From Penicillus capitatus (Eukaryota > Plantae > Chlorophyta), in NCBI GenBank assembly GCA_965649825.1, contig OZ287694.1, positions 867,197-931,196 of the forward strand: a stretch of DNA of 64,000 bases, read 5' to 3'. This document shows, piece after piece, positions 4,469 through 59,319 of the stretch (position 1 is its first letter; each line of letters starts with the position of its first letter). The position numbers and the translations under genes were made by a program. The notes beneath the pieces were generated by a model, which worked only from the letters and a program-made list of their open reading frames with translations, had not been told where the DNA came from and searched no databases.

Positions 4469-4500
<32 letters not shown>

Positions 4501-22978: not shown

Positions 22979-23791
22979 TTAGAGCGATGTTGTTGCGTTT
23001 TCATTGGCAGGCATGGAACCCACTGCATCCGGTTCATTCAGTTCGAATCTCTGAAGCGAAGCACCAGGAGGCAATTGTCCGATGGACACACCGGGTGGTA
23101 TCTCTTCGAAGAAAATACCTTCTGGAGTCACTTCAAACGGAACTCCGGCCTCGATCAAAGCCCGTGCAACGACGAGTGCTTCTGTATCGCCGGTGGTAGA
23201 ACCGACCACCACTCCCTGAGTCGTCGGCAACGTCATGACCGGGCTCGGTGATGCAACCGGACTTGGTGATGCAGCAGCGACCGGGCTCGGTGATGCAACC
23301 GGACTTGGTGATGCAGCAGCGACCGGGCTCGGTGACGCACGCACGGTCGGTGACACAGCATCTGAAGTAGCAGTGGTCAATGCCGACCCTGAGATCGAAG
23401 CTGTGGCTCCGGCGCCATCACTCGAAGCGGTCGATCCGAGAGATAATGCAGGCGAGGATGGCATTTCCACGAAGATGCCTGTGATAAAGAAGCCAAAGTG
23501 GTGATCCAAAAGTCGCCGCTCGGTCATCTGGAAGACCATCGCTCGGCTGGCTTTGGACATCTCTGGCGTGAGGGTTTCCTCGTGCAACACGCGTGAAGCT
23601 GCACAGAAGCTAGCGACCATCGCCGACGAAATCTGCCGAAGACGATGACTTACTCGCAAGAGAGATAAGACTGTGCAGAACGACCTACAAGCACAGCCAG
23701 CCATCAACGAGGTGCGATTTTGCATGCCCTTAGGCATGACGAGAAAACGCACGAGGATGCAGATGCGTTTTCTGTTCGTCCGGCTCGACAT
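22979..23791 (-). CDS. Small secreted preproprotein A (type I) with Ser-Pro repeat linker
   Basis: Model MSSRTNRKRICIL|VVLHSLISLAT|SRVLHEE with 68-nt (phase 0) and 55-nt (phase 1) introns around a 31-nt micro-exon. Contains RRLLDHHFGFF and C-terminal ALIEAGVPFEVTPEGIFFEEIPPGVSIGQLPPG. Confidence 0.8.
   Translation of the reverse strand: MSSRTNRKRICILVRFLVMPKGMQNRTSLMAGCACRSFCTVLSLLRVSHRLRQISSAMVASFCAASRVLHEETLTPEMSKASRAMVFQMTERRLLDHHFGFFITGIFVEMPSSPALSLGSTASSDGAGATASISGSALTTATSDAVSPTVRASPSPVAAASPSPVASPSPVAAASPSPVASPSPVMTLPTTQGVVVGSTTGDTEALVVARALIEAGVPFEVTPEGIFFEEIPPGVSIGQLPPGASLQRFELNEPDAVGSMPANENATTSL
23238..23335. repeat. 42-bp coding tandem repeat (about 2.3 copies) encoding SPSPVA/SPSPVAAA
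   Basis: accgggctcggtgatgcaaccggacttggtgatgcagcagcg occurs exactly at 23238 and 23280, partially at 23322. Confidence 0.9.
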
Positions 23792-24140
23792 CTATCTCCG
23801 TTTGCAGGAAGAAGCTAATGCTCTTTGCCACGAACTCGGAGTTCTATTTCGCTGCGCGGGCGGACTCTCGTCTTTAGATGAAGAGGCCTGATCGATTCTG
23901 AATTTATTTCATCAAAATGACGTCATGGATGATTCCATCCGCTGGACGCAAGACATCCTCCGCGGATTTGGCATCCTCAGCGTAGCTACGCCACCACGTG
24001 TGCCAACGGTAAGAAACGCGGCGTTAATCATAAGCATTAAAATTCGGCTATGGACAAAGCAAAAAGACGTTTGTTGAATTGCCAATGACAATCATCACTT
24101 CATCTCTAGCGTTTCACGCAAAACATCGACACAAGGTGCT

Positions 24141-27100
24141 TCAGATGTCGGTAGATGTGCCCGGCCGTGCTCGAGAACTGGATCGGTCGGTACGGTGTCT
24201 GCGAATAAGGCGATGGTACAGAGAGACGAAATGCATGACGAGAAAGATTCTCAAGACACTGAGCATTCCCCATTCCTGCACATCCTCCATGCCTTCGCTT
24301 TCCAGCACTGCCTTGATGTACATCTCGGAGTATCTGAGGAGCTTGTATACGAAAAAGAAAAAGAGGCCACAGATGGACGTGGACAGTGCAATCGACAGGA
24401 GAATTCGAACGACTTCAGATGTACGATGGTCGTTGAAAAACAGGCCGCAAGCAAAAGTGAGTTGCGAAACAACTAGGGAAGACGTTTCGAGAGCGTTCAG
24501 AAAAGCAAAGTCGTTTTTGAATGGCCGGCAACAGACATGGATGTAGATTGCCAGTGAGAGCAAAGAAATGGCAAGGATGCCCTGGATGTTGACGCCCAGG
24601 GGGTACGAGAAAACAACGATGACAGCAAGGACGGATTTGCGCAGCATGACAATGGACTCCCAGAAGATGAAGCGCTGTTTGTAGGCGCGATAGAGGAATC
24701 CGGTGGCTTCGGCTGTCCACGAAGCTTCGGTTTGTTCTGTGGTGTTCTGTGTGACCAGGAAGCCTGCCAGAATGAGGGGCATGCCAAAGGAGATGAGTAT
24801 GATCACTGGCCATCCAATCGCGCCTGCGAGAACGGCGTGTGAACCTTCATAACATTTGAGGGACGTGTCCACTGCCCAGTAACGAACGGTACGATCCTTT
24901 TCGGTATCGGTCGGATCGGCCACATCGATGCAGTAAAGAGCATTGGCTGCTGTCTTGGTGATCGGAAGGTATGCCAAGTAAACCATAGCCATGCAACTTA
25001 ACAGCGCTCTTTTGGCAAAATACGAAAGGCCCCTGTTCAATCGGATGGCGAGAATGGTCCAGAGAGCGATGTAGAAGACGGTTATCCCCAGAGGCACGGC
25101 AAAGTGGATGACGGATCGCAGGACGGATCTTGGAGGATGATGATCTGTGGCGAAGAGACAGTCGACAGAGAGGACAATGCCATCGGTCGCAGCACCGCCC
25201 AAGAAATCTAGAAAGAGAGAACAGCATCGTCATCCGTGCATCACAGGCAACAGAACGCGCCTGCAGTTAAGAGGAGATTGCGCATCCAGTCCGTCCAGCT
25301 CGTGTTGATGTACACAGCGGCGGCGACAACTTGAAGAAAATTGATTGTAATCTGCAAGGCATGTATAAAGAGACCGTTGAGCTCATGCCAAGATCTCACT
25401 TTGAAGATTTCCACAACGCTTTGTTTTGCCACGACTGGATTTATCTTCGGCTCATTGTCTTCGTGGACAGCAGACGTCAGAAGATCCGGATGGACCATTT
25501 CAGGAGGCACATGTCCGCTGTGCAGCATTTCCACCATCTGGAAGTTGACGGGCACTTCTGTTGGTAGCTTTTTCGCAGATATACGTCGACGAATGCTCTT
25601 CTTGCTGGCTCGAACGACAAAACTGGTATCCATCGTCCGCGTGTGCAGGTTGCTTCTGATAGCAAAGCCAGACAGAAACAAAAGCACGATCAGAGAGAGA
25701 ATAAAGAGAGACAGCGTTCCAGCATTCTGGTAGCATTTGATGCAGTCAAACGAACGCGAACGTCCGTAGCCTCCATCGCACGATCCGCATAAGACCCCAG
25801 CATATCCCTGCATCACACATCTGTCCCATTCATTTCAGTATTGAACAGAGATCACACTTTTTTGCACTGGGCTCGGGCGTAGGCATCGGCCAGTTGCTCA
25901 TCTAGTTCACAGCTTTCCAATGTCTCCGTCGCCGTCGTCAGTTTCTTCTCTCGATCGGCGAAGTCGCATGCCTCTCTTGATATGCATTGTTTAATGTATG
26001 CTGAGCATGGTGATCGATGCCAGTACCCCCGTACGGGTTGGATGGCATTGCCAGCACAGTTTCCGTTATCAGGACAGGCAGAGCATTCCGATGCATTGAG
26101 ATCAAAATTGTATAGAGATCCGCTGCAGGATACGCAAAGCTTCCCGTCTTCCTGAACAACCTCTCCCAGTCTGCACTGTCGAACCTCAATCTCAATAATA
26201 AAGCGCTCGATACCAGGTTCACTAAAGTCGATGTAGATCTCGTAAGGACCTGGACTCTGAAGGCTTGAGATGGGCGGAAACCCCTTTAGCTTCTCATCCA
26301 GTAGCATGTTGATGGAACCAGTGAAGAAGCCGCTGGGCGATTGTATCGTGGCTGTGATGTATTGATCCTGTTGTCCCAAGGGAGGACCTTGTCCGAATCC
26401 ATCCAGTACTTCCATCTGAACAATCGGGAGTGGATCGCCGCTTCTGTGATTCGTGGCGACCAGATGGTTGCCCTTGATGGGTGCACGGTTTCCAGTGGTG
26501 CTGCCTCGTTCGGCGAATTCCAGGACGTTTGTGGCATAGGAAGCCACCGTATGACCATAACGACCGGCACGGTTTCGCGACCAGTTGGGACACACATCGT
26601 GAGCAGATGCCAAGAAGTCTAGATCCCCAATGACGTCAGCTGTGTAGGGTGCTGGCGGAATCTCTGTGCGTCTAGAAGAACAGGCGTAGCGGAGAATGTC
26701 AGGATGCTGTACAAAGATTGCGCCTCCAGCGATCTCTGCTGTGTTCTCTGAGAATGTGCTGCCTGTCACAGCAAAGAGGATACATGATGTTGTCTCCACT
26801 GAGCAGTTATGTGGGGTAAATGCTGTGGCGACATGCACAGCCCCTACAAGCCATTCACAGATGACGATCTCTCACAATATCCTCTAGACATGGTTACCTC
26901 CAAGACTTGCTGCATTACTCTCAAAACTGCCATTGTTGATCTGCAGTGCAAGGGATCGAGATGCCCCTGAGCTAAAAGAGATCGCTCCTCCTCTCACCCC
27001 AGCCACGTTATCATGGAAGACACAGTCTGAACAGAGAACCATTGATGTGCCTTTTGCCAGGATCCCTCCTCCGTCTCCAACTGCACGGCACATCTGAATG

Positions 27101-30100
27101 CGGAGATCATAGGCGGCCAGATCAGAGTCCAGCAGCCAGAGAGCACCAGCTGTGGCGGCAGAACTGTTTAACAAGGATGCATGGACAATCATCACTGAGC
27201 TGTTGGCGTTTGCTGCGATGGATCCACCATCTCTAGATGCTCTGCTGTTTTCGAACGTCACGGAAAACACCTGCACAGTGGAATTCTTCAGAAAGACAGA
27301 TCCACCGATCGACGCCATATTTCCCTCGAAGACCGTCTCGTTCACATTCCCTTCAGAGCTATCCAGAAGCAAACCGCCTCCCTCTTTTGTCGCTGTGTTG
27401 TTACGGATGATGCTATCATAGAGGGCGATTGCTGAGTTTGATTGGGCATGGATCCCTCCACCCTGCTGCGCACGACTGCTAACAATATGTGCATCTGTTA
27501 CCATGAAGACGCTCGATTCTTGGGCATGCACACATCCTCCACTGCCTTGTGCTTCGTTGTCTGAAAACGTCACCGCCTTGATCCGTGTCGTACTACCACC
27601 GAAGCTCGTTATCGCTCCACCGATCGACTGAGCCTTGTTGGAGATGGAAGTCGAGTTCTCGAGGAAGAACCTCGAACCTTTGGTGACAAAAATCCCTCCT
27701 CCATTTGTCGCACGATTCGAATGGATGTCGCAGTCAGTTGCATGGACGGTCGAGTTGAGACAGAAGATAGCACCGCCCTGTGCTGCGGTGTTGTTTTGGA
27801 TCGTGGAGTCGGAGATATTGAGTCCACTCCTTTCAGCGATTCCGATTCCGCCGCCGTCTATTGTACATTGATTATCTCTTATGATGAGCCTCTCTGCTGC
27901 GACAAACATAGTGAAAACAATATGAAACGCGCCGCCACTACTGTGGGCCTTGTTTGCTCGGAATTCTGAATCTGCGATCGACATGTTGCTGTCAAAACAA
28001 GCCAGACCGCCGCCACGGTTGTTGAGGGCGCTGTTCTCAATGAAGGTCGTGTTCTGGATGACGCTGGGAGCCTTGGCGATATTGAGTCCACCGGCGAAGA
28101 CATTGGCAATGTTCTGTGCGATGTGACAGTCTACGATCGTCGCTCTTCCATGCTGGATCGTCATTCCGCCTCCCGACGCCGACGCACGGTTTCCGGTCAA
28201 GGCGACCTGATTCAGATCAACATCTCCAAATTCGGTGCGCACTCCGGATCCTTCTTGAGCTGTGTTGTGGGATACGGTCGAAGACTGCGCCGTGAGATTT
28301 GATTCCTCCACGCCGATTCCGCCGCCTTTACTGGCGGCGCGGTTCATCGTCCAGTTCGATGCTTGTACAAGGACGCTGCTCTGTTCGAAGATCCAAGCTC
28401 CGCCTCCATTGAGCGCAGCCGAATTACCAGAGAAGGTGCATCGATTTACGATGACGTCTCGCGACGATCGGCTGTCGAGGCCGCCGCCCGCTTCGGCAGA
28501 ATTGTTATTCAGAGAGCAATTGCGGATCTCCATTCTGGGAGATGCGACCAACGAGATGCCGCCGCCTTTGCCGAGAGCCACGTTCCTATTCATCACCGAG
28601 TTCGCAATCATGCCGAGAGACATGCGATCACAGCGAATGGCGCCTCCGTTGGTCGCCGTATTGTTTTCGAATGCGGAATTCTCGATGATGAGCTCCCTGG
28701 CGGCCGACGCTGACAGACACCCACCATCCCCAGCCGTGTTGTTGCGACATTGCACTTCGGAGAATGTTGAAGGGCGGCTTTCTCGGAGGAAGACTGCGCC
28801 TCCGTTCCCGGTAGCATTGTTGCTCTCAAAGACGGAGGCGCGCAGTTCCAAACGACCGTTTGACAGATGGAGTGCTCCAGCATCCGTCTTCGCAATGTTG
28901 TGGTGGAAGGAGCAGTTGCCGATCGTCAAATTACCATCGATGGAGGCGATGGCAGCACCGCTCTCTGCGACGTTTCCCTCAAAGATGCAGCGGGAGACAC
29001 TGAGCAGCTCGGTGGCATTTGCGAGAATGGCACCGCCGGAATGGGAGACAGAATTTCTGCGAATGGAGCTGTCGGTGACAACGACGGACACGGCACGATC
29101 GAACACAAAGGGAGGATCTCTGGAACTCTTTTCGATGTCGGCGTCTGCTATGTCGACGTTGCTTTCCACAGCGCGAAGAATCGAGAGTTCATTGGACCTT
29201 GCGACCAGACCGGAGACGGCGGTCGAGGATCCAGACGGCGCCGACATCAACGCGATCGGCGAGTCGCCGTCAGACAGCCGTCTGTTTCTCCGGAGGACCG
29301 TGCCGTTCAGGACATTCTGCACGGCAAGTGCGGCAAAGCACCGATCGCCACAGGCATTGCCCAAGAAGACAACATCGACCATTTCCACAGAGGGGCACGA
29401 TGGCTGGGTGGCCGAGAGACCTTTGGATCCATTCAGCGTGTTGCGTCGGAAGGTCACGTGGTGCAACTTGATCACTCCTTGCCCATCGTCATCCGAAGCG
29501 CATTGACTAGCGATTCTGATGATGGATGCATCTGACGCTTCTAGGTCACACCCTTGGAAGACGAGGTTGGCAAGGACGACACTCGGCGACCTGCAAAAGC
29601 CATCCTTTGTACGACAGACCGAGTCGAGACGTGTGATCACCCGATCTCAAAGGCGCCGGCGTTCGACGGACAACGGATTCGAGTTTTGAAATCGGACCGA
29701 GGGAGAACGCCATCCTCCAGCTGGGCGTTCTCGATGTAGGATGTCAACGTTAGATTCCAGGGAATGAACACACGAGTGGGAAATCGTATGTCCCTTTCGA
29801 CGCGAAGAAGAACGACATCGTCCTTTGCCGTGCAGTTGACGACGGCACTGATGTCATTGGACACTCTTTCCAGCGCAGCATTGTCGATCGTCCACGTTCG
29901 GGTCGCCGCGTCCAACAACTCGGATATCTCTTGTCGCTCGAGTCGACATTCCGGGACCGTAACTGAAATGTACGGGGTCATACAGTTAGGATGGAAAACG
30001 CTGGAGAGCTACTTTGGGTTCGTGAACGTCGGCGCGTTTCTTGCAGAAGACCACGAGTGTCCTCACGCGTCTAGCAATGCATCGCATCTCACACGACAGC

Positions 30101-30460
30101 ACACATGGTGACGAAACGCAGAGTACTTGGGTGTCGTGTTCGAAATGTGCCTCCTTTGCTGACCATGGCGAAACGGGAGATCGAATGGGCCCTAGAAAAT
30201 GCTCTTGTCTTGCATTGCCGCTTGCAAGAATGATGGACGACGAAGGCGAACAAATACGGAAAGGTGTTCGCCGTATACGAAGTATCTATCGTAGGTCGGC
30301 ACACCGTCGAGAGCGGCATACCCGCAGAGCGTTTCGGCATCGATAAAACATCGCTGGTTCCTTCCATGTCCTCCAAGGCGCAATGCGCTTTGAGCAAAAG
30401 AGCGAAGACTGCGAGAATCAGCGCGAAGCGCTTCGACGAACGCCCGGCCAGGCGGTTCAT
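24141..30460 (-). CDS. Receptor-like protein copy 2 (head type II)
   Basis: Signal peptide MNRLAGRSSKRFALILAVFALLLKAHCA; beta-helix exon 26884-29640; stalk 25852-26838; TM exons 24141-25816. Same intron positions as copy 1. Ends STDI-TGA. Confidence 0.85.
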
Positions 30461-31922: not shown

Positions 31923-32702
31923 ATGGCGAGCTCTTCTTCCATTAGACTTCTCTACTGCCTCGTAAGTCTGTCGATGCCAATCGGCGAAGCTGTCTGAACA
32001 CTCTCTGTGGCAGATGGCCGTTCTCTGTTTTGCCTACGGAGCAGGTGCCGTTTCTTAAAGAGATTCCGCCTTGAAGTTTGCTCACTCGCGTGTTCTTTAG
32101 CGACGCGTCCTTTGGCCGACGATGGGGCTGCGAATTTTTCTGCGATGAGAGACGCTGCGACGGCGTTTGGAAAACCGCAAAGACACCTCTTGTTCTGGTA
32201 CTACAAAGTCGCCTGCCCTCCCCCACCCGTTAGCGCCATGCAACTTGCCGTCGCTAAAGTAGTTACTTCTGGGGCAGCATCCGGTTCGGCAACGGCACTG
32301 ACCTCCACCGGCGATGGAGGAACGTTACTGGCGATGGCTGAATGTCTTCCGCAAAAGGATGCGAGTCAAACATGCGAGGCATCGGAAGACGTGCGAAGGG
32401 CCATAAGACGACGATTCTCGTTTTGCGATCAGAAGGATGCCGCTGTCGTCGATGCTCTTCTCAAAGCGAAAGTGCCATTCAAACTCAAACCGAACGCCAT
32501 TTTTTTCGAACAGATTCCAATGGGTGTCACTATCCCTCAGCTTCCGACTGGAGTGTCTCTTGAAGACTACCGAGCAACAGAAGAAGACAAGGCCGAGTTC
32601 CGTGCGCAGAAAAGTATTCAGAAGAAAGACACTGGCGGCAGCATCCAAGTTTCTGCAACGGCATCGGCCAAAGCATCGCCGGACATGCCCCATGGCAGAT
32701 GA
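31923..32702 (+). CDS. Small secreted preproprotein B (type II)
   Basis: MASSSSIRLLYCL|MAVLCFAYGAA|TRPL with phase 0 and phase 1 introns around a 31-nt micro-exon. Contains RHLL, AECLP and C-terminal ALLKAKVPFKLKPNAIFFEQIPMGVTIPQLPTG. Confidence 0.8.
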
Positions 32703-34432
32703 GGAGCAAGCATTTTCCAAGTTCTCGTTTAGTGTCCATGATGACTTCTATTTCGCATTTTGAGTTGTGCGTCTAAAGAATTCGACCCGTTCAGCTCCAG
32801 CAGGAGCTGGTCGAGAATTCTCTCTTTTTTGTATCTCAAGTTGCACCTAATGGCGATTGTATGGATGAACGTCTTGTCATCGAACAATCTAGTAATCACT
32901 TCCGCTATGTTGAAACAATCTCTGGTTCACCAGATGGACGTTTCGCGACGGCGTCGTCCCTATCTCCCAGAACATAGGCCTCCTTCGACCGTATAGTACG
33001 AAATCTCGGTCCAAACGCTGGTATAGAAGCGTATCGGCCAGGGTGACTTTATGAATGTCGACTGAACCATATGTGCTTTAAGCCGTTTCATCTCTGCCGG
33101 TCTACAGATTCAATGGCAGAGAGAGTCACTTGCCGTTCCTCTTTGGCGGCCTTGCTCAGCTGCGATTTTTGAAAAAGGAATAGCAGGAGAGGACAGAGGT
33201 CGTCAAACTGAGGTGACAGCCTGAGTCTGAGACAAAGGAGGCAGGGATGAAGAGGTCGATGTCCGAGAGAAGGACAAGGGAGTAGCGACCGGAGTGGGAA
33301 GAGTTGTCACGGGAGATGACTGAACACGAGAACAGGCTCTTGTCTTTGCAGAAAGCGACGGGGACATCCGATCGAACGACGCAGAAAAGTGTGTGATCGT
33401 AATCACAATCGCAGACGCAGTGGTGATCAAAGAAGCCTTCTAGATCCAGAGGACAATACACGCATCGAGAGTTCCATCACCTGAACCAGAGTTCACTGCT
33501 TTGTGCACCACCTACACTCTTGCGTTGTTCTCCTTGTAGTACGATTCCGACGATAACTCTCGCCGCAACGCTGTCGCTCAACATAATCGCTTAACAAACG
33601 TGCCGAGTTGAAAATCAATTACCAATGATGCGTCTGAACAGCTGTCACTCACATCAAAGACAACAACATGTTTAACACACAAGAGCAACATCTCACATCA
33701 CGCTGTCACAGTCAAGAAACAGGAGAGGGTGTTCTTTGGATCCCCTGTGTCACCCAATTGTCTGAACCTCGATTCGGAAGCAGGAACGAGATACAGAGTA
33801 TGTTGCAATCTTCGAGTTGCACAACGCCAGCGGTTTGATCTCCTCTGAGATCACTCAGCAGTTCGCTAGAGGAGCGATTGGGCGCAGAGGGAGTGATAAG
33901 GAAGAAGTAGTGCTCCGCCTCCTCGATGTCTGGATTTTCGGCCATATGGACACGCATGCCATGGGAACTCTTGATTCGGTCATGAGTCGAGGAGGTGATG
34001 CCACAGGACAATCTGCAGTGGCATCGGCGATTTCGTATTCATCGAGAAAACCCTGTCGGTTCATGCATCGTCTGGGGGTTGCTGAGGGATGCTTGGCGGT
34101 GTCACTCCAACAGGTTTGTCAACCGGCAGCCGATCCTTGAGGCCTCGGGCGCTTCTGTAGCAATCCAGAAGAAGAGATTGCTGTCCAATGAAGCTTCTGG
34201 ATCTGCGTGTCCAGTTTCTTGGAACACGGCGAAGGCAGTGATATTGGATGTAAGATCACTGTCATCGTCTCTGGCCTGTCCAGCTCGAGGGGAGAGGATT
34301 CGTGTTTCCGACGAGCCATTTGGTCCATCGGTGCATTTTCTCTGGAACATGAATGACCCGATAGATTCATGAATGCAATTGCTCCAGGGGCTTGAGACAA
34401 GGAAGGTGAGTCCGATAGGGACGTCATTCTCT

Positions 34433-34754
34433 GGCCTGTTCGGAGCCTCCATGTGCAGGTCTGTGATGATCTGCATCAAACGGCAGACCATCAACAGACT
34501 CATGCACATGGGTAGCTATGGCCTGTTGGATATAGCTACGTGCAGGTCTGTGATGATCTGCATCAAAGGCAGATCATCGACAGACTCATGCACACGGGTG
34601 TAGCTATGTACAAGGTCTGCGATGATCTGCATCGAACGGCAGATCATCGACAGACTCATGTACAGGGATCTAGCCAAGGATGCTCTGATGGTCTTCGTGC
34701 GTCGGAAATGTCTCCTCTTCGACCGGAGATGCAAGCTGGCAGGCAGGTGATCTC
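34433..34754. repeat. Left block of palindromic ~60-70 bp tandem repeat (3 units)
   Basis: Units at ~34450, ~34540 and ~34610, each an imperfect hairpin (gtctgt-gatgatctgc...gcagatcatc-g-acagac). The block is directly repeated at 36092-36417. Confidence 0.9.
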
Positions 34755-36098
34755 CACTTCTGCGACTGCGAACAGCGGCTCGATGATCTTTGAAGCGTGC
34801 CTCTTCGTTTGGATTCTCCGGGTTCTCGATGAATGCCCGAGTGGACTGGCCATAAGACGCAAGAATCGGACCGTAGCGATGGGCATCGTTTGATTCCCAA
34901 TCGGAACACGCTTCGCGATTTGGACGGAAGGTGTCGAGTTTCTGGAGGGTCTTGTTCGAGTGCAGCTCTGGTGGGACGCTTGTCTTCTTGCTGCCACATG
35001 AGTAGCGCAAGATATTGGCATCTTGCACAAAGATGCCGCCACCTGCAACGTCGGCGCTGTTTCTCAAGAGACGGCAGCCATTTCTCAAGAGACGGCAGCC
35101 AGTTACGGCGACGAATGTGCACGAAGCATTGGTTCGGGGACAGCTTCTCGGTCCGCATCGAGTAGAGACATGGACAGCACCTGCACACGTGGGTATTCAG
35201 AATGGATGATCGCAAATGGTTTAACGCACCTCCTAGGTCAGCTCTGTTGTAATTGAATGCACATTCGTTCAGCTGCAGTGCCAGATTCTGCGGCACGTCC
35301 GATTCGAAGGCGATGCCGCCGCCATGTTCTCCAGCGACATTGTCGCTGAAGGAAGAGCTGGATGACAGGAATCTCGATGATCTGTCTGCGAAGACGCCGC
35401 CGCCTTTAACCTCAGCGTGGCAAGCGGAGATCCACAGTTCAGAAGATGTCATACTCGATCCAGAAAGTGTTATTCCGCCTCCCGTCCTCGCCGTACAGTT
35501 CTTGACGAACACATCGATCACCGCTGCTGAACTGTTCTGCGTCAAGGCCATCGACCCTCCAGATTGTGTGGCCTCGTCGTGCAAAAAGCTGGCGCTGTCC
35601 ACTTGCAGATTTGAATGCGCGAGCAACAACGAACCACCAATGGATGCTTCGTTTTTCGAGAAGCTGCTCTGACGCACGTTCACGACTGAATTCTCCGAAT
35701 GGACTCCACCTCCAGCTACAGTCGCCAGATTGTGTTGCATTTCGCTGAGACGGATCGTCACACTGCTGTTCACACGGCCAAAGATGCCAGCTCCGTATCT
35801 GGATCTACTGTTGTTAATGATCGATTCTTCGATTGTCAAGACACTCATCTGGTCTCCAAACAACGCTCCCCCTTGGTCACCCGCGGAGTTATTCTGAAAA
35901 GTGACGTCTCTTGCACTGAATGTGGAGCCATGACTGTAAATGCCTCCACCGAGGTTGCCTGCACGGTTGGATAAGACTGTGGAGTTCTCGAGCACAACGT
36001 TTGCTCTTTGGTAGCCGCTCAGTCCTGCTCCATTGCTCGCCGTGTTCGATTCAATGCTGCATCGATGCATGAGAACAGTCGAGTTGTCTTCATGTGCA
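34749..36098 (-). pseudogene. Internal ~1.35 kb fragment of a copy-1-like receptor gene (end of beta-helix to start of stalk)
   Basis: Co-linear and highly similar to 17551-18877 including the intron. Carries an extra 21-bp tandem duplication (tttctcaagagacggcagcca x2, ~35059-35100). Lacks both gene ends. Confidence 0.92.
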
Positions 36099-36417
36099 GG
36101 ACCTCGTTGCACTGCTTCGACTGGCAGAGCTTCGGAAGACTCATGCACATTGGTGTAGCTATGGCTTGTTCAGAGCCTCCATGTGCAGGTCTGTGATGAT
36201 CTGCATCAAAGGCAGATCATCGACAGACTCATGCACACGGGTGTAGCTATGTACAAGGTCTGCGATGATCTGCATCGAACGGCAGACCATCGACAGACTC
36301 ATGTACAGGCCTCTTGCCAAGGATGCTCTGATGGTCTTCGTGCGTCGTAGGCGTCGGGTCTTCGACAGGAGATGCGAGCTGGCAGGCAGGCAGGCAGGCA
36401 GGCAGGCAGGCGATCTC
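36092..36417. repeat. Right block of the palindromic tandem repeat, ending in an expanded (GGCA)n microsatellite
   Basis: One degenerate plus two clear hairpin units, then the same tail as the left block. About 7 GGCA copies at 36381-36411 versus about 2 in the left block. Confidence 0.9.
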
Positions 36418-38739: not shown

Positions 38740-39111
38740 CCCAGACATGTTGAAAAGACCGATTGCTCGTGCATTTTGTGGAAAGGCCTCTCGCTTCAGT
38801 GGGTCCTAGATTTTCGATCTGCCTCAGCTTATTATTGCCTGCAAGACCCATACGGAACTTCATGTTTTGGTAGGACAAGAGCCGAAACCCTGAGGCCGAT
38901 TTCGTACTGCTGGATGCAGTTCGCGTACTGGGGACTTTGCAGGCTGAGTTCCGGCGTCAAGCCCCCGGCAGTGCGTGGACCGACAGCCGGCGTTGCATTC
39001 ACCGTCTCCAATGTCCACGACAATGATGCGACGGACGTCTCCACAATGAGCTCATGTCGTCAGTAACGTCGCCGGTCTCTCTGTCACAGCTTTTGGCGGG
39101 AGTCGTCCGTC

Positions 39112-39887: not shown

Positions 39888-40085
39888 GTAACGTGGACGG
39901 GCGCCGTAGAAAACCGCCTCATTTCTGACAATTGACACGAAGGTGGTGCGACGGACCTTCTAACATTTGCCTGGCTGAAAGTATATGTTGGGAATCGAGT
40001 GTAAGAGTGGTTCAGACGATAGTCGAGTCCTTGCGCGTTGAGACGACGGAAACGCAATCAGATTTGAGGCAATACGAATAGGAGT

Positions 40086-40295: not shown

Positions 40296-40313
40296 CAGAT
40301 GACAGTTAGATGT

Positions 40314-48647: not shown

Positions 48648-49259
48648 TCATTCTTCGTATGCAAAATCCTCAAGATCCACTCCAGGTGGCAGCGGTCCCA
48701 CAGGTATCCCGATCGGTACCCGTTTAAATAACACGCCGTCAGGCGTTTGTGAAAAAGGCACTCCTGCCTGAAGTAGAGCCAAAGCGACGAGTTCGGATTC
48801 CTCGTCCTCTGCGTTCACACGAAAGCTGCGTACAGGAACGAAATGCAGAATCTTGCACGTCGGTATGCCAGTAGTATTCGTGCAGCTTTTTTGCACTCGG
48901 GTGTCTGTTTTTCGATCGACGTAGACACCCCCGAGAAAAAACCCCCAATGACGATCCTGTAATCGTGGCACCTCCATTTGATCATCTTGATCGATTTCGA
49001 GCTGTCTCTCCGCCTCGAAGTCTGGGTCTCGCTTTGTAATTTCGACTTGCTCTGTTGCCGAGGCAATCGCCACTGTAAACAACAACCGTTGTCCACCTGG
49101 GCTGGTCATTGTGATCAAATCGCACCTGCATTGCGGAAACAGCAGAAACAGACAGTGGCCTAAAGCACGACGCAGAACACATTGTGAATGTTGCGTTAAC
49201 ATAGCGTGAGCAAAGAAATGCCGCCGTACCAGAAGGAGAAAGTGTGAGAACGCGAACAT
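48648..49259 (-). CDS. Small secreted preproprotein C (type I)
   Basis: MFAFSHFLLL|ATVCFCCFRNAV|AIASATEQ with 70-nt (phase 0) and 53-nt (phase 1) introns around a 34-nt micro-exon. Contains RLQDRHWGFFLGGVYV and C-terminal ALLQAGVPFSQTPDGVLFKRVPIGIPVGPLPPG. Confidence 0.8.
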   Translation of the reverse strand: MFAFSHFLLLVRRHFFAHAMLTQHSQCVLRRALGHCLFLLFPQCRCDLITMTSPGGQRLLFTVAIASATEQVEITKRDPDFEAERQLEIDQDDQMEVPRLQDRHWGFFLGGVYVDRKTDTRVQKSCTNTTGIPTCKILHFVPVRSFRVNAEDEESELVALALLQAGVPFSQTPDGVLFKRVPIGIPVGPLPPGVDLEDFAYEE

Positions 49260-50470: not shown

Positions 50471-53400
50471 TCAGACACCGGATGAGGAGCCCGGATCTGC
50501 ATGCCGAGCTTCATTACTCTGTTCCGGATCTGTAGGCTGAGCTGCATGACTCTGGTTGCGTTTGCCACATAAACGTCCGATCAGGTGACCGATGCAAATG
50601 GAAAAGAAGACTCCCAGAACGCGAAAAACACCCCAGTTATGTGCTTCTTTCATGCCTTGCCCGTCAAGAACGACTTTCAGATACACTACAGCAGATGTGA
50701 CGAAACTGTACATCAATGTAAGGAAGAATCCGCAGACTGATATCGACAATAACGTCGTTACCAATATCCTCACTATGTCAGAAGGGCGGTCGTCATTAAA
50801 GAACAGGCCAGACATAAAAGTGAGTTGCGAGATAACCAAAGAACCTGTTTCCAGAGTGTTCAGAGAATGAAAATCTTCGCTAAAAGGTTGACAAGTGACG
50901 TGAACATAGTTTGCGAATGTGAGAATGCAGACAGCAAAGATCCCCTGGATGTTTGTTCCCAACGGATAGGAGAACGTCACCACAACTGTCAGGACAGCCT
51001 TCCTCAGCATCACGATCGATTCCCAGAAAACAAAACGCTCTTTATAGGCGCGATACAGGAACCCAGTGGCATCTGCCAGCCAAGGATTCTGATCGGGCTC
51101 CTGGGAACGCTGCCGGATCAAGACATAAGCCAAGAGGGCAGGCAGTCCGAAAGAGAAGATGGCGAGGACCGGCCAGCCGGCAGCCGCGGCGAGAACAGCG
51201 TGAGATCCCTCGTAGCACTTCAGGGAGGTGTCCAGCGCCCAGTACTCGTCGGTGTGATCATCGTCGAACCCTGTAGAATCGTGGACCTTGATGCAGTGGA
51301 GCGTGTTGACGGCCGTCTTCGTGATGGAGACGTAGGTTATGAAGGAGACTGCCAAAAAGCTGAGCAGCGCCCTCTTCGCGAAGTACCACGTGTTCTCTTT
51401 GTACTTCCGAGTCATGAGGATCCAGAAGATGAGGTAGAAGATCAGTATGCCTGCAGGAATGAGGAGTTGGACGACCGATCGCAGCACGGATCTGGGAGGA
51501 TCGTTGTGTTGATCGAAGAGGCAGTCGACAGAGAGCGCCACTCCTGCAGTGGCAGCTCCGCTTACGAAGTCTGCAGACACAGCAGCCAGTCAGCAGCCGG
51601 ATCTCGGATTTAAACAGCAAGCATACCTGCCCCGAATAGCAAGGAACGCATCCAAGACGTCCAGTTCACGTTGATGATTGCAGCTGCAGCGATCACTTGG
51701 AGGAAGTTGATGCTGATCTACAACACAGAACAGGTCGAAGGAGGGAAGCCACGAAGGACGTTCGTTCTGCCTTGAAGATCTCGACGACAGTCCGCTTTGC
51801 AATAACTGGGTCTGCTGTCGATTTTGTATCCTTAGATGCAGAGGCAAGCAAATCTGGATGAACCATCTCGGGAGGTACCTCTCCTCTGTACAGCATTTCC
51901 ACCATTTGGAAGTTGACTGGAACGTCGGTCGACGGTCTTTTCTTCGAAGGGACAAGGCGACGATTTCTTCGACTGATTCGATTCGTCGTGGCCTGATATC
52001 CCACCGGCTGAGTGTTCAGGTTACTTCTTATTGCGAAGCTGGAGAGAATGAGCAAAACGAAGAGAGACGCCACAAGAAGCAACACGGTTCCGGAATCGTG
52101 AAGACACATGCCACAATCAAATGACCAAGAACGTCCGTATCCAGCATCACATGAGCCACAGAGGAGCCCTGTGTAACCCTGAGACAGAGAACGCTCAGCA
52201 ATTGGAATATCACTGTCGAAGCTCACTTCTTTGCATTGGGCCTGAGAGTAGTCTCTGTCCAACGACTCGTCCAGTTCGCAGATCTCCATTTCGCTTGTCA
52301 CATCATCCAGATCGTCTTTACGGCCGCTGAAGTCACAAGCCTCTCGTGATACACATTGCTGAACATGTCGAGAACAGGGTGTTCGATGCCAGTAGCCTGC
52401 GTTTGGGTGGATGACTTCGGTGGTGCAGTTCCCATTATCGGGGCATGGTTGACACATTGTTGCATCTGGATCGAAGTTGTACTGCGATCCGCTGCAGAGA
52501 ACACAGAGCGTCCCGTTCTCCTGGGAAAACTCTCCCAGTTGACATCCTCTGACTTGGACCTCGACAGTCAGCGATTCCAGTCCAGACTCGCTGAAGTTTA
52601 TTTGGATCTCAAACCGGCCCGGACGCTGGAATCCTGTGATCGGCGGGAATCCCTTCCGCTTCTCGTTCACTGGCATGTTGATCTCTCCAGAGAACAGATC
52701 ATTCGGAGAACGCATGGTTGCCTCGACGAATGCGTCGCCTTCGCCGAGCGCAGGACTCTGTCCATACCCATCCAGGACCTCGACGAGAAGCGTTGGTAGG
52801 GAATCTCCGCTTCTGTGATTCTTGGAAACGAGTTCGTTGTTCTTTACCGGCTTCTCGGTCTTTGTTGCATCGTTGTTGCGTATGAATCCCCTGGCGGATC
52901 TGGCAGACGAGGCGATGTTTGGGCCGTATAGGCCGGCCTCGTTTGTGGACCACTCCGGACAGATATCCTTGGCCGATTCCAGCGCGTCCAATTCTTTTAA
53001 AACATCTGTCGCATCGATCGCTGGAGGGACTTCTGTGTCTTTGGGAGAGCAAGAGTAACGAAGGACTGTTGGATCTTTCAGGAAGATGGCACCCCCTGAC
53101 GTCTTCGCCTTATTCCTCGAAAACCTGCTGCCTGTTACCGCCACAAAGGCGCAGGGATCCTCTGGATTCGTGCAACTCTGTCTACGACTATGAGTGGCAA
53201 CGTGCACTGCACCTATAACATGATGACTCTCAGGAATTGTTTGCTTCTGAATTATTCCCACACCTCCAATACTGGCATTGTTGTCGTTGAATGTGCAGTT
53301 GTTTAGCTGCAGCGCAGGAGAGCGGGGCTCGGAGGAATCAAAGGCGATTGCTCCTCCATGTTTTTCAGCTTCATTGTCAATGAAAGCACATGTGGAGCAC

Positions 53401-56400
53401 AGAAAGATGGAGGAAAGGTTAGCATGAACACCTCCGCCTGATTCTACTGCCTCACATTCAGTAAACTCGACCCCATAAGCTGTGAGACTTGAGTTGGAGA
53501 GCCAAATGCCTCCCCCACTCTGTGCACTGCTGTTCGAAAACGATGTGTTGACGATGGTCAGCAAGTTCTTCAGATTCGCTGCAATAGATCCACCAGACGA
53601 GATCGCTGTGTGATCTGCAAACACGGAGTTCCTCAACTGCAAACTGGAGTTCCTCATGATTATCGATCCCCCGAGCTGGGCCATGTTTCTCTCAAAGGAA
53701 CTTGCATTTGCAGCCAGTTGGGCATCTTCCAAGAAGACAGCACCACCTTCTCCGACTGCAGTGTTGTCCGTAAGAAGACTGTCTTGAAATGAAGCCGTCG
53801 AAAATCTATCAACATAAAGGCAGCCTCCGAGTACAGAGTTGTTTTCAGTGAAGGAGGAGTTCCTTGCTTTGAAGACACCCGACACAGAACCATTGAGGCA
53901 TCCTCCTCTTACTCCAGCAGAATTGTTCCTGACGGTCGAGTTCACAGCAATCAGTTCCGCATCAACGACGCGGAAAGCACCACCAAATCTTTCAGCTCTG
54001 TTTAAGGATACCGACGAATCTTTAAGGATGAGCACACTTCCGGTGTAGACTCCCAATCCTCCGGCAGCACTGGATGCACTGTTTGTCTCAATCTTGCATC
54101 CAGTCAAATTCGCCATGGTTCCACTTTGAGCTGCAAGTGCTCCGCTGTCTGATGCCGAGTTGACCTGGAAAATAGATGCAAACACTTCGATCATAGACTC
54201 GCCAGAAGCGCTGATTCCTGCGCCAGTTCTGCGGCAAGTGTTTCCATCGATTGTCAGATTTCTGGCAGTGACTGAACAGAGTCCTACGTCCATGGCGCCT
54301 CCAGATCCGTCGGCATAGTTCGACAAGAACTGCGAGTTCACAATCGTGACGTTACTCTGAAAGCAAGCAAAACCGCCACCTCGATCTGGGATAGCTGAAT
54401 TCTCCAGGAAGGTCATGTTGCTCATCGTGGCAACTCCATCGGATACACTCACGCCTCCACCGAAAAACCCAACGTTCTGCGATGCCACACAATCTCTGAA
54501 CTTAATCGTCGAAGCACGTGTCGCTATTCCTCCGCCACCGCTTTGCGCGGAGTTTCTCGAATAGTTGTCGCCTGTCATTGTAGCAGTCCCATTCACAATC
54601 CATAATGCAGCTCCATCGGTCGTCGCTGAATTGTCCATGTAGTGAGATTCGAATGACTCGATGTCTGAATCTTCAACTGACAATCCTCCTCCTTTCAACT
54701 GGGCACTATTAGAAGACCATATGACTTTTTCTATTCGAATGCTGCTCATCTCGTAGATCTCTGCTCCGCCGCCGTTGAGCGAAGCCCGATTGTCTTGAAA
54801 GTGACTTTGCCGGATGATCAGACCTCTTGATGAATGACTGATCAACCCACCGCCTGTCGCAGCAGCATTCTTCTTCAGTGTACAGTTGACCAATGCTGTT
54901 TGTGGTGATGCAATAAGAGAAACGCCTCCACCGCTGTTCCGGGCCACATTCTTTCTTAAGGTTGTGTGCTCCATGTTGCTGTCAGAGATGCTGTCGCAGT
55001 AGAGTGCCCCGCCGTTCTCTGCAGCATTCTTTATCAAGACAGATCTCTGGATGACGAGTTCTTCTGTTAGGAGTGCCGACAGACACCCTCCATTACCAGC
55101 TGTGTTGTTGCTGCATTCTACATTGGATATTCGTGATGCAGTCGTCGCCTCAATAAAGATTGCGCCTCCATTACCAGAAGCAGTGTTGCTCAGAAAGATA
55201 GAGGAGGACAGCTCTAGCATTCCGTCGGAAACAAGGAGTGATCCTGCATCCTTGATGGCCACATTGTTTCGGAAGAAGCAATTGTGGATCGTCAAATTGC
55301 CGTCAAAGGAAGCGACGGCGGCACCGGTTTCTGCAGAGTTAGAAGTAAAATTGCAATTAGACACCGCGATACTGATAGTGGCATTTGAAAAGATCGCAGC
55401 TCCAGATTGCTGGGCGAAGTTCTCATGGAATGCACTGTCTACGACCGTGACAGCTCGGGCTCGGTCCAGCAAGAGAGAGGATTCGCTGGAGGTTTTGATC
55501 TCAGCAGCCCTCAACTCCAGACTGCCTTCGACGATATGGATGACAGACAGTTCGTTTGAACTGGCTCTCAGACGGTTAATCGTCGACGAAGATCCTGACG
55601 AGGACGACATAAGGGTTGACGATAACCTTCCTTCAGAGATGCGTCTGTTCTTCCTCAGAGTCAATCCTCTTAGATCGTTCTCCAGAGAGAGTCTGGCAAA
55701 GCACCGATCACCGCAGGTGTTGTCTGAGAAGGCGACGTCGATCATCTCCAAGGACGAGCAGGACGAACTGGAGAAGGAGAGACCACTGGCTCCGTCGAGC
55801 GAGTTTCGTCTGAACGCCACGTGATGGAGCCTGATCAATCCCGGAGAGCTGTCCGGCAAGCAGTCGCCGACCTCGATGATGGAGGCATCATCTCCGTCCA
55901 ACGAGCAGCCCCGAAAGACGAGATTGGCCAGGAGTACACTTTGAGACCTGCAGAAGACTAACGGTCAGTCACATCGCCAATCACGCATTTGCTTTTACCT
56001 GATGTGAAAGATCCCATCCTTCGGCGGACATCTGAGTCGGACCTTTCTCTCTGCCTCCGGGAATGTACCATCAGCGAGCTTGGTTGATGTGACGTAGGAA
56101 CTCAGAGTGAGATTCCAAGGCACTGTGACTCTGGCAGGCACTCGTATGTCGTCCTCGACGTCCAGAAGAACGACATCGTTCTCTCTTGTGCAGTTGACGA
56201 TGGCACCAAGATCATCGGATACGCCTTCCAGTGCCGCCGAGTCCACCAACCATGTCCTCGTCTCTTCGTCCAACAGCTCTGCTATCTCTTGTCGTGTCAG
56301 CTGGCACGCCACATCTGTCCACGCCAGACACAGTTGGACTATGGTTTCAGAACAGCTTCTCCCTTACCTTCGGTATCAGGGCCGCGGGATCTTCTCTGCG

Positions 56401-56854
56401 CCAAACCACGAGTAGGCGGGCGACCCTTACAACAGTCACGTTCAACACCGCAACCCGAGAGATAGAGAAGGTAACAAGATACCAGAGCTTCTTGAGGGAA
56501 TCCGGCTTTCTGTAGATTCCAATCTGCAGTGTGTCCACTCCTAGTATCTAGCAAGACGACATCATCACTACGTCGTCGTATTGCGAGAAACGCAGACAGG
56601 CGCAGTACGCCGTACGCCGTACGCGAACGCGAGAAGTGAAGTCCACCGCCGTATAAGCAGATTACGGATGCGACGTCTAGAAAACCCGCTTACAAACCTG
56701 GAGAGAATAGTTTTTCGGTGAAATTGACGCGTTTGCTTTCTTTGATCGTTGCGTTGACCCTTGTAAACAACAGAAGCAAGGAGCAGAGGTGAGTCATTTT
56801 GGAGCATTGGCGGAATTTGCGGCGGGAGTATTCTCTCCCTTTCCGCATCTGCAT
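50471..56854 (-). CDS. Receptor-like protein copy 5 (head type II)
   Basis: First exon ...MTHLCSLLLLFTRVNA|TIKESK; ORF 51693-55901 spans beta-helix, stalk and TM1; TM exon 50471-51580. Ends SSGV-TGA. Start codon approximate. Confidence 0.85.
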
Positions 56855-58695
56855 GTGCAGCCTATCGTGTTCGTCCATACTAAGACGCAGACGCCTTTTT
56901 TCGCTGCTACTTCCTGTTGTTTAAACAGAAACCTTAAAGTGTCTGGCTCCTCGAAGCAACCTGCGGGCGCAATGATATAAACTGAGAGTCATTAGCCACG
57001 AACATTTGTTACCGGCGATGACGCTACAGCGAAGGATGCCAAGTGTCCTCCGCTTTTCAACGTGTCGGTCACCTTCTGGTGTGTTCGTTCATTGATAAGT
57101 CGCTCCGTCGGTCGAGTCAAAACGGCAAGGGTTTTTATTGTCTGTCAAAAATACCGTGTGTTCGTCCGTTCTGTAAAGCAGTGTTGAATTGTTTCGCATT
57201 TGCTCGACTATGTGGAAAGATGCACGAATTCGATCGAGCCGCCTTGCTCAATATTTTCCAATCCAGTCGATTTTCGTTGTTTCTCAACTCGCCAGGCGCG
57301 TCTGTCCGGTGCGCTTGGGAATGTTAACCAAGTGCCCAATCTGTTGATAAACAGCCTTGCATCTGGCAGATTCCTCTTTCGGCTGACATAAAAATACTCA
57401 CCGTTTTCCCTCGGTTGTCGTTTGAATGGCCCATAGGCCTTAGGCGGCAAGACGTTAACAAATCTTAGCAGTTGGGTTGCATTGAGATGAATTTTTGACC
57501 TTCGCAAGTTCGTACTCCAAATATAGCGATAGAGAAAGTCGACTGTCGTCTGACTTGATCTTGTGGAAAGCGAATAGAAGAACGAAAGCTGCCTTGACAA
57601 TTGTTCGTTTGTTCGTTTGTTATCTATCCTATTGTATTCATAATGAGATCAAAATCGCACTAGACGTCCCGATTTATTAATTGTGAGGTGTCGACATCTG
57701 CTGATCGAATATTAATTACTATGTATGCACTACTGTGTCTCTCATCGGCATTTCTTTCATTCTGATTGGACAACTCGAGCTTCATCCCGAATTCGCGAAA
57801 GAGTGGGTAGAAAGGTGTTCACCACAGCACGACGTCTAAGTTATCACGGATGCATTGAGAAATGACCATCGGTCATTTCATCTGTCAAGATAGCAAACAC
57901 TTCGAATGGACTGTCTCACTGTCCTATCTCTAACAACATCAGCACATGAGAAGACGGATTACCTACAGTTCTTTTTGCACACGAGAAGATCACACCACAA
58001 ATGTTGTTGTGCGTATCAAACTGAAAGTCATGTCCGTTAGTTCATTTTCTTGCTTTGAGAAACTGACGAAGTCTCTTAGCAGATGGCAGTCGCTTCACAT
58101 AGTAAAGGTTGCTTTTTTAGATTAAGAGCTGAAATCATCCATTCATGCTGCTGTTTCGCAGATGGTATCAAGACAATCACGCAAAGTGGCTTGTCTTTCG
58201 AATCAACGACGCTCTTACCAGTTTTCGTTTCTTACCTTAGATGAACGCCGTAGGTTCTTCGATGGAGATAGAGGAAATACGATCCTTCTAGAATGAGATA
58301 GATAAGAAAGCTGAACAAACAAAAAACCGACCCGTATTGAGTCTGAAAACGGGCGGAGAAGACGTCAGCGGGGGCGAAGAAAAGAAAACGATTCAGCGCC
58401 AGTGGATATTGGTAGACAGACAAGACTTAGACTTCGGGTCAGCGACGTGATGAATAGCCAGCTGTGTACTTGAAAAAGAAAGCGCATTGTTACTTGGTAG
58501 CTTCCCATGCAGCAGGCAAGCACCACCGTATGACTCGCGTTTTCGCATCGGTGATAAGAAGCTGGTGCCAATGCCCCCGCGGCCAAGGGTATTTAAACGG
58601 AGAGCCGACTCTTTCGCAGTATACTTTTTCTGGAGAGTGAAAAGCAAGGTTTACAAAATCGGAAGACCACGAAGAACGTCGTCATACTGAAAACC

Positions 58696-59319
58696 ATGTC
58701 GTCGTTAGCACTCAGGCACTGTTTCTCTTGCTTTGTGAGTCGTCCATCGATATTTAAACGGATCTTTAGCTAACTCAGCGGTTTTTATCTTAAGGCGATA
58801 CTGTGCTGTCTCGCTCTTACTAATGGTAAGTCCCTCGAACAAGAAATCGTGTATAACAGTAGAAGAATAAACTGTTAGCCACAAGAGGTTTCGCAAGGGA
58901 AGCTGCTGCCGACCAAGAACTCCTGGACGATACGATGACGTTGAATGTTGATAAGCAAAGAAGACGATTATTACAGGACGGGAGATATCGCGTCCCTGAC
59001 CCACCAATCGCGGCTGCTGATGTGGCGGGTAGGAGCTTCCTTCCAGTCCGTCTGTGCGAAGGGGTCATTTTTAGAGGAGCTGTCGAGTTGCGATGGCTTT
59101 TTTGCAGTTGTTGAATGCATCCCAGCTAACACAGGACGGGCTCAGCTCAGGGGAATCTTGAGTCGTCTATTCGAACCGAACGACCTTGTTTTGTTCACGT
59201 TTCTCCTTGATCTGGGACTGCCGTTCACTATTCAAACTGATGGCATCTTTTTTGACCTGACAATACCCACGCGCTGCTCAGTTTCAGTGGTGAAAACTCT
59301 TGATATGATCCTAGGATGA
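58696..59319 (+). CDS. Small secreted preproprotein D (type II)
   Basis: MSSLALRHCFSCF|AILCCLALTNA|TRGF with a 31-nt micro-exon; RRRLLQ; third 46-nt intron; VECIP; C-terminal FLLDLGLPFTIQTDGIFF (diverges afterwards). Confidence 0.7.

Follow-up and report, generated by a model that had tools for sequence, protein, structure and literature searches.

What are the four small genes, g1 to g4, that lie among large receptor-like genes in the 64,000-nucleotide stretch of contig OZ287694.1 analysed here (the window), and with what might their products act? A first-pass annotation, made from the letters of the window, had taken them for a family of small secreted preproproteins with a fixed micro-exon signal peptide and a processing motif. 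Judged from sequence, they belong to a previously undescribed, lineage-restricted green-algal family of small secreted proteins, and they stand beside large genes whose Chlam_PMP repeats predict a parallel beta-helix (hereafter PMP genes). Our preferred reading, to which we give somewhat less than an even chance, is that the small proteins are processed by a site-1 protease (S1P) at an RxLL motif and act together with the receptor-like product of the adjacent PMP gene. The four genes are predicted as follows (positions are those of the window):

22979-23791, minus strand: g1, predicted splice model of 229 residues, exons 23753-23791 / 23654-23684 / 22979-23598
31923-32702, plus strand: g2, predicted splice model of 223 residues, exons 31923-31961 / 32014-32044 / 32101-32702
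48648-49259, minus strand: g3, predicted splice model of 162 residues, exons 49230-49259 / 49126-49159 / 48648-49072
58696-59319, plus strand: g4, divergent member, predicted 140 residues, exons 58696-58734 / 58795-58825 / 58888-59028 / 59108-59319

All four splice in frame through GT..AG introns of 52-79 nt, giving predicted proteins of 140-229 residues. Exon 1 (30 or 39 nt) ends in phase 0 and is followed by a micro-exon of 31 nt (g1, g2, g4) or 34 nt (g3) that ends in phase 1, the leader (signal peptide) being coded across the two in each gene; g4 has a third intron, unlike g1-g3. Related DNA came from two ENA metagenome assemblies, ERZ25074695 and ERZ26696514, and represents three species: the window's own (species A, the 1.84-Mb contig ctg340529, locus L009, of ERZ25074695, at 34x coverage), a sister species (species B, two contigs of ERZ26696514, syntenic with the window at ~78% DNA identity) and species C (one 6.9-Mb contig in ERZ25074695, at 344x coverage). 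The same exon layout is found in 11 gene models from these three related species, which bears out the earlier claim of four genes with a fixed micro-exon leader at these positions, and distant paralogues at other loci have exon 1 and micro-exon lengths of 36/34 nt (L003, L008) or 39/31 nt (L004, L005).

On the evidence of this comparison, g1-g4 are real protein-coding genes under purifying selection, with an inherited three-exon head: the models are in frame with GT..AG introns, the layout is kept in three species, frame-breaking indels are confined to introns, and the ratio of non-synonymous to synonymous divergence (dN/dS) is 0.14-0.69. g3 and its species B orthologue P0002 have in common the start codon and the donor and acceptor of each of the two introns, with indels of 4 + 2 nt in intron 1 and 2 nt in intron 2 and exons free of frame-breaking gaps (dN/dS 0.14, synonymous divergence dS 0.58). 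The g1 orthologue in species B (L006) has the same 39/31 nt exons, its introns measuring 69/59 nt vs 68/55 nt in the window (dN/dS 0.35, dS 0.52), and the g2 orthologue has a micro-exon of 34 nt vs 31 nt, an in-frame 3-nt indel (dN/dS 0.69, dS 0.43, rising to a dN/dS of 0.88 in the middle part); indels in the introns of the species B orthologues are of 1, 2 or 4 nt. It is highly improbable that the models are artefacts, whether as untranscribed open reading frames (ORFs), as pseudogenes or as 5' exons of the adjacent PMP genes. Starts, splice sites, frame and stops are kept in three species, synonymous changes outnumber non-synonymous ones, intron 1 of the g1 orthologue (L006) contains an in-frame stop codon, a signal-peptide exon separate from the small genes belongs to PMP-B, and PMP-A, -D and -E likewise possess N-domain exons of their own, 1.7-2.2 kb past the small-gene stops. 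An artefact would, however, fit two details: the introns of g1 in the window, 123 nt in total, hold no stop codon, leaving the unspliced frame open as well (270 residues), and in the sister species the intron-3 acceptor of g4 is gone, the C-terminal domain of that copy fitting the family profile weakly (E 0.08).

Splicing at g4 varies in another place. Its intron 2 (58826-58887) can end in frame at either of two acceptors, 58878 or 58887, which are 9 nt apart. Of these, only the upstream acceptor is usable in the other species A allele, and only the downstream one in the sister species. The second g4 allele of species A is intact only with shifted acceptors.

What kind of protein do these genes encode? 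The full-length models are built to one plan. A hydrophobic leader is followed by 25-35 residues of low conservation and then by RxLL; next comes a variable middle, which takes the form of either a Cys-x8-10-Cys loop or a linker rich in Ser and Pro, and last a C-terminal motif of ~45 residues, [ED]xxxV[AV]xxLLxAGVP[FY]xxTxxGIxFxEIPxGVSIxxLPxGVxLxxF. In 11/11 models a hydrophobic core falls within residues 7-21 (best 10-residue window, mean Kyte-Doolittle 2.5-3.3), small residues occupy the candidate -3/-1 positions and no membrane segment follows the leader. The number of Cys is even in all 11 models (0, 2, 4, 6, 12), and NxS/T sites are recurrent and conserved. Within the window, a profile of the C-terminal motif picks out g1-g4 and no other place (E from 1e-20 to 1e-28, against 0.6 for the next match), at the positions below, which also give the one tandem repeat that bears on the plan:

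23045-23182, minus strand: conserved C-terminal domain of g1, residues 163-208 (93.6 bits with the motif hidden Markov model)
32436-32570, plus strand: C-terminal domain of g2 (motif profile)
48663-48797, minus strand: C-terminal domain of g3 (motif profile)
59182-59295, plus strand: half-length C-terminal domain of g4 (motif profile)
23237-23339, minus strand: 42-nt tandem repeat, 2.5 copies, in g1 (Tandem Repeats Finder)

The first-pass annotation had given the full C-terminal motif to all four genes; g1, g2 and g3 do carry it, but g4 and its relatives have the first half only. The 42-nt repeat of g1 encodes (SPSPVAAASPSPVA)n, a Ser/Pro linker like those of hydroxyproline-rich glycoproteins (HRGPs), and is not present in the sister-species orthologue; other Ser/Pro modules are PSPPPSP in P0127, CPPPP in g2 and the Ser/Thr/Pro tail of P0129. 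Two stretches of the C-terminal motif, IPPGVSIGQ and LPPGASLQR, give it the look of an internal duplication.

Relatives with a name were not met in any of the searches. Pfam, searched with the four spliced proteins up to E 10, returned only an NLE match attributable to chance (E 0.11), a PDB sequence-profile search gave no match (best E 0.52), and a word-indexed search of 5.8 billion proteins recovered only two window ORFs and one orthologue. When the C-terminal profile was run exhaustively with HMMER on 1.84 billion representative proteins, 14 matches came out at E < 0.001, nine of which are family ORFs: two are the window's own and seven come from ENA metagenome assemblies (those traced, from ERZ25074695 and ERZ26696514), none with a name or annotation. 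Also among the matches are three bacterial repeat proteins, in which the likeness is confined to GVPF..TG or PxG, and a JGI metagenome protein, P0132, of 109 residues with tandem GVSFEQLPE units; we treat these four as motif-level noise. In P0132 the GVSFEQLPE units are similar to both PxGVSxxxLP loops of the C-terminal motif. One more family member was located by hand in species C. The database entries of the family (P0001, P0002, P0003, P0124) are truncated or intron-reading ORFs only, which explains why it has gone unnoticed so far. Two earlier statements are thus upheld, that the family is unrecognised (no Pfam or PDB match, none by Foldseek in PDB or BFVD, and only unnamed HMMER relatives) and that an ORF track misses the structure of its genes.

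Is the protein cut, and where? RxLL (RRLL, RHLL or RQLL) is found at residues 49-58 in 9/11 models, where it is the sole element of the N-terminal third conserved across subfamilies, with its spacing from the leader kept. In the window the motif and its homologous position are:

23507-23518, minus strand: RRLL of g1, residues 51-54, followed by DHHFGFFITGIFV
32181-32192, plus strand: RHLL of g2 (the species B orthologue has RRLL)
48957-48968, minus strand: PRLQ of g3, at the homologous position
58962-58973, plus strand: RRLL of g4

RxLL is thus shared by g1, g2, g4 and six of the seven relatives, with PRLQ in g3 and its orthologue. For g3, the AlphaFold2 model built on a 12-sequence alignment (an earlier one on five sequences was poorer) has a predicted local distance difference test score (pLDDT) of <50 over residues 1-40 and of ~80-87 from residue 41, the residue after PRLQDR, to the C-terminus, so that the border between disorder and fold lies directly after the aligned motif position. 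In the predicted domain, of ~100 residues, a strand and a long hairpin precede a helix, and a short hairpin comes last; Foldseek with this better model found nothing closer than E 0.59 (PDB) and 0.31 (BFVD), with a query-normalised template-modelling score (TM-score) <=0.27. Across the family, the models point to a mature part that is a folded domain of 90-190 residues, often disulphide-bearing or Ser/Pro-rich. In animals, S1P cuts ATF6 at RHLL. In plants, the pro-regions of PMEs have RRLL and RKLL as their processing motifs and the RALF23 propeptide is an S1P substrate (bioRxiv 10.1101/2022.07.28.501549), while S1P-type subtilases have been reported throughout Archaeplastida (PMC6713707). Given the conserved RxLL, the border between disorder and fold, the better preservation of pro-region and RRLL than of the mature half between the g4 alleles (see below), the known S1P sites and the reported presence of S1P-type subtilases in Archaeplastida, processing by such a subtilase at RxLL is a reasonable proposal and, from sequence and model, a plausible one.

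Several claims of the first-pass annotation had to be narrowed at this point. An RxLx motif had been assigned to each gene, which is right for g1 (RRLL), g2 (RHLL) and g4 (RRLL), but the RQLE chosen in g3 is non-homologous to these, the aligned site being PRLQ. An acidic pro-segment is present in g3, g4 and some relatives, but that of g2 is neutral, the net charge of this stretch running from -9 to +2 across the models. The suggestion of a processed peptide ligand does not fit a predicted mature part that is a folded domain of 90-190 residues and not a short peptide hormone. Nor do the plant families whose pro-regions carry such sites turn up here: in Pfam at E up to 10 the RALF domain (PF05498) is unmatched, and the YISY motif is in no model; the PMEI/PME pro-domain (PF04043) is likewise unmatched in Pfam, the pro-region being only 25-35 residues long and predicted disordered.

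The sequence of events that we propose would then run as follows. The leader would direct the small protein into the endoplasmic reticulum, and the poorly conserved, often acidic stretch of 25-35 residues after it would serve as a pro-region; a subtilase of the S1P/SKI-1 type would cut after RxLL in the secretory pathway, removing the pro-region. The released mature domain would start with either a disulphide-closed beta-hairpin or a glycosylated linker rich in Ser and Pro; beyond it would lie a helix, then a hairpin and a pair of PxGxS[IL]-type loops. At the cell surface the mature protein would work with the product of the adjacent gene, as a ligand, a co-factor or a wall-side partner, this product presumably being large and receptor-like, with a Chlam_PMP parallel beta-helix as its ectodomain and a multi-pass membrane domain at its C-terminus.

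Why look to the neighbours for a partner? Six large PMP genes alternate with the small genes in the window:

15248-20822, 24141-30459, 34519-36169, 41182-46982, 50471-56306 and 61036-64000, all minus strand: the six receptor-like genes of the array
24141-30459, minus strand: PMP-B (Pfam Chlam_PMP, E 3e-20), divergent from g2, with g1 downstream on the same strand
30323-30460, 29643-29963, 26884-29640 and 24144-25229, minus strand: signal-peptide exon, N-domain exon, Chlam_PMP beta-helix ORF and membrane exon of PMP-B
50471-56306, minus strand: PMP-E, divergent from g4, with g3 downstream on the same strand
56001-56306, 51693-55901 and 50471-51580, minus strand: N-domain exon, beta-helix ORF and membrane exon of PMP-E (its signal-peptide exon, upstream of 56306, falls outside the mapped model)

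A PMP gene opens with a signal peptide and an exon for the N-domain; a long ORF matching Chlam_PMP (also NosD/Beta_helix) comes next, then further ORFs that Pfam does not match, and a last, membrane exon that encodes 5-7 hydrophobic helices. This C-terminal multi-pass membrane domain has no Pfam match; its paralogues in the three genomes number in the dozens, all unnamed, and no relative with a name was found. A literature search on eukaryotic Chlam_PMP families found nothing useful. That the micro-exon leader might be common to the PMP neighbours was considered and dismissed, PMP-B having a single 138-nt leader exon.

All family members read in context (g1-g4 and those at L003, L004, L005, L006 and L008) lie 1.5-3 kb from a Chlam_PMP/Beta_helix gene, either head-to-head with it (g2, g4, P0127, P0129) or just upstream of it on the same strand (g1, g3, P0126 and the species C member). 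That a receptor-like membrane gene is found beside all of them is indirect support for reading the small proteins as ligands or cell-surface proteins. A rival account would make the small proteins structural or matrix glycoproteins of the wall, HRGP-like with a globular head and a Ser/Pro linker, unrelated to the PMP genes and using RxLL as a structural or sorting element. We consider it unlikely, if still deserving of some weight. The Ser/Pro modules of g1, with its (SPSPVA)n repeat, and of P0127, g2 and P0129 would suit such a role, as would the sequons, the Cys pairs and the conservation, in one subfamily, of the residues after RxLL. Those modules are nevertheless short or absent in g3, g4 and P0126, only g1 having the short repeat, and Pfam finds no pherophorin, extensin or other wall-protein domain; moreover, wall glycoproteins would leave unexplained both the PMP adjacency, found at >=5 separate loci, and the joint divergence island described below.

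How much can the processing and the partnership bear? A number of points weigh against them and keep our confidence tentative. PRLQ, in g3 and its orthologue, is without the P4 arginine, meaning that cleavage in this form is not universal in the family. The DHHxGFF that follows the motif is conserved too (in g1, g3 and P0126), and RxLL could for this reason belong to a structural element instead of marking a cleavage site. The AlphaFold models were built on 5-12 sequences, with mean pLDDT of 52.6 and 69.9, and the signal peptides were judged by a simple hydrophobicity heuristic and not by a trained predictor. The order in the window, F-g4-E-g3-D and C-g2-B-g1-A, together with the resemblances of g1 to g3 and of g2 to g4, shows one segmental duplication of a larger unit; the four pairs of the window are therefore not independent and reduce to two ancestral arrangements duplicated together. 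PMP linkage could also reflect co-duplication in tandem arrays and not function. L003/L008, L004 and L005 are independent loci for the linkage.

The array itself may bear marks of recent change. Copy C (34519-36169) is a partial PMP copy in which an N-domain and a membrane exon were not found. In the other haplotype it is ~95% identical to part of PMP-A, and it looks like a recent partial duplication. The 7.3 kb that include it (33012-40326) do not align to the species B locus L001, where the flanking matches are ~200 nt apart. The N-domain exons of PMP-A and PMP-D (20517-20822 and 46665-46982) are near-identical in their second half, with the adjacent g1 and g3 only ~30% identical; the sequences of these two exons suggest recent gene conversion between array members.

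Do the small genes and their neighbours also vary together? The window was compared with the contig ctg340529 (L009) of the same species, in which positions agree with those of the window to within one base, so that the segments compared can be taken as allelic. Outside two islands the identity is 98.7-100%:

51800-60200: hyper-divergent island with PMP-E, the intergenic region and g4, 67-95% identity
51402-51801: left edge of the island, 97% identity
51.8-56.6 kb: PMP-E, 77-95% identity
56.6-59.8 kb: g4 and the spacer towards PMP-E, 67-77% identity
60202-64000: right flank, 100% identity
29.5-33 kb: milder island, divergence 4.4% in the PMP-B 5' exons, 3.6% in the spacer and 2.8% in g2, against 0-0.2% further out
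22.0-40.0 kb and 40.3-43.1 kb, whole stretches: 98.7% and 99.2% identity

Allelic divergence thus peaks jointly on the small gene and on the 5' part of its divergent neighbour, and is graded by pair between these two haplotypes: extreme for g4/PMP-E, mild for g2/PMP-B and none for g1, which shows no differences (the divergence at 36170-39986 is 0.18%). Both PMP-E alleles are intact (85% protein identity, dS 0.31, dN/dS 0.25), dN/dS between the g2 alleles is 0.31, and in g4 the pro-region with RRLL is 73% identical between alleles vs 42% for the mature C-terminal half (dN/dS 0.89). Between the two sister-species contigs the g4 segment is rearranged and its identity is 78-88%, vs 98% in the flank, and over the g4 region the species A haplotypes are as distant from each other (72-73%) as from either species B haplotype. 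One species B contig, L002 (8531-8932), is without most of PMP-E (window 50965-56053), a presence/absence polymorphism of a receptor-like gene. The constant pairing with PMP genes and the g4/PMP-E haplotype island are new with respect to the first-pass annotation.

From the PMP pairing and the extreme allelic divergence of one pair, we infer that a ligand-receptor or recognition role is the most attractive hypothesis. A specialised form of our preferred reading would go further: the pairs would be polymorphic ligands and receptors for self/non-self or gamete/partner recognition, their alleles long kept by balancing selection, and would constitute the two halves of a recognition system in a siphonous, giant-celled alga, the linked receptor ectodomain reading the hypervariable mature domain. 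In this strong form we hold it to be quite unlikely. An island of ~8 kb at 67-95% identity between haplotypes of one species, with a right flank at 100%, two intact PMP-E alleles, a mature g4 half diverging well beyond its pro-region, and the same segment divergent and rearranged in the sister species are what such a system might leave. The comparison nevertheless covers two haplotypes per species, and extreme divergence is seen in 1/4 pairs only. Positive selection between alleles was not seen (dN/dS 0.25-0.36 for PMP-B, PMP-E and g2, 0.89 for the mature half of g4, none > 1), and clean trans-species sharing of alleles is unsupported, quartet sites (24:14:7) favouring grouping by species. Furthermore, in a tandem array with copy-number change (as in L002) and gene conversion, the 'alleles', and with them the islands, may be different surviving paralogues on different haplotypes.

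The same signs of turnover bear on a further rival, in which the family would consist of secreted defence or wound-response proteins (antimicrobial or plug-forming) in a birth-and-death cluster like the resistance-gene clusters of plants, and which we find quite improbable. A small, secreted, lineage-restricted family with fast members (g2, above all in its middle part), set in a tandem array with copy-number and structural polymorphism, would be in keeping with it. Against this, no likeness to a known antimicrobial or lectin fold came out of Pfam, the PDB profile search or Foldseek, and g3 is strongly conserved (dN/dS 0.14).

In which organism, then, would the small proteins and their PMP partners act? 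The window is eukaryotic DNA with a G+C content of 50.7% and carries, at one side of the array, the following housekeeping genes:

433-1035, minus strand: Ank/BTB protein gene
4135-6357, minus strand: cytosolic HSP90
6550-7892, plus strand: sodium:solute symporter
10257-10913, minus strand: SAS-6, N-terminal domain

The closest named relative of the HSP90 fragment is that of Caulerpa lentillifera (90% amino-acid identity), vs 76-86% for other named green algae and land plants; by this sequence evidence the host is a green alga, probably an ulvophyte near the siphonous Bryopsidales. SAS-6 is not known from flowering plants. A land-plant host was dismissed, given the HSP90 nearest to Caulerpa and the SAS-6 centriole gene in the window. 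The HSP90 likeness to Caulerpa lentillifera also led us to discard a reading of the motif as an RxLR, PEXEL or TEXEL host-targeting signal of the kind found in oomycetes and apicomplexans. The plant analogy drawn earlier for RxLx keeps its ground as to the letters, which are those of known plant sites, but has to be carried over to a green alga with an HSP90 nearest to Caulerpa. The genome of Caulerpa lentillifera has a G+C content of 40% (PMC6476727), vs 50.7% in the window, which sets that species apart from the host.

Siphonous algae build large bodies from single giant cells and need to seal wounds, to fuse or reject protoplasm and to recognise gametes, and yet secreted signalling or recognition proteins of ulvophyte and siphonous green algae are almost undescribed. 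If our preferred reading is true, the family, with its S1P-type motif, unseen fold and obligatory PMP linkage, would provide the first candidate ligand-receptor pairs for these algae, and S1P-type processing of pro-proteins, as in land plants and animals, would extend to chlorophytes. The divergence island provides a concrete locus for asking whether balancing selection acts on recognition genes in siphonous algae. More generally, micro-exon leaders hide small secreted proteins from ORF-based catalogues.

To which known systems can the small proteins and their neighbours be compared? They are most readily set beside substrates of S1P (SBT6.1/SKI-1), with which they are predicted to share a signal peptide or luminal exposure, a non-conserved pro-stretch and an R-x-L-L directly before the functional domain; RRLL in g1 and g4 and RHLL in g2 are letter-identical to known sites (RRLL/RKLL of PME, RHLL of ATF6). 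They differ in a mature part without likeness in sequence or fold, in the PRLQ of g3 and, from RALF and PME in particular, in the absence of a RALF domain (YISY, four Cys) or a PMEI/PME domain. We know of no S1P substrate in chlorophyte algae. The green-algal HRGPs (pherophorins, GP1-type) are also secreted, and some members of the family likewise have an (SP)n or SPPP linker with a globular end domain, but a pherophorin domain, or any other Pfam match, is missing and the linkers are mostly short or absent. For the PMP neighbours only, the chlamydial Pmp proteins (PF02415) offer a parallel in their repeated Chlam_PMP motifs, which predict a parallel beta-helix, and in forming a multigene family; the algal genes are eukaryotic, with introns and a signal peptide, and end in an alpha-helical multi-pass membrane domain rather than in an autotransporter beta-barrel. 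Finally, the Brassica SCR/SP11-SRK and Dictyostelium tgrB1-tgrC1 systems share no homology with the algal pairs, in which two haplotypes were compared, with no dN/dS > 1. Their likeness lies in arrangement and variation: the gene of a small secreted protein stands beside, and often divergent from, that of a large membrane receptor-like protein, and in one pair, g4/PMP-E, the apparent alleles are deeply divergent, with leader and pro-region conserved and the putative mature part hypervariable.

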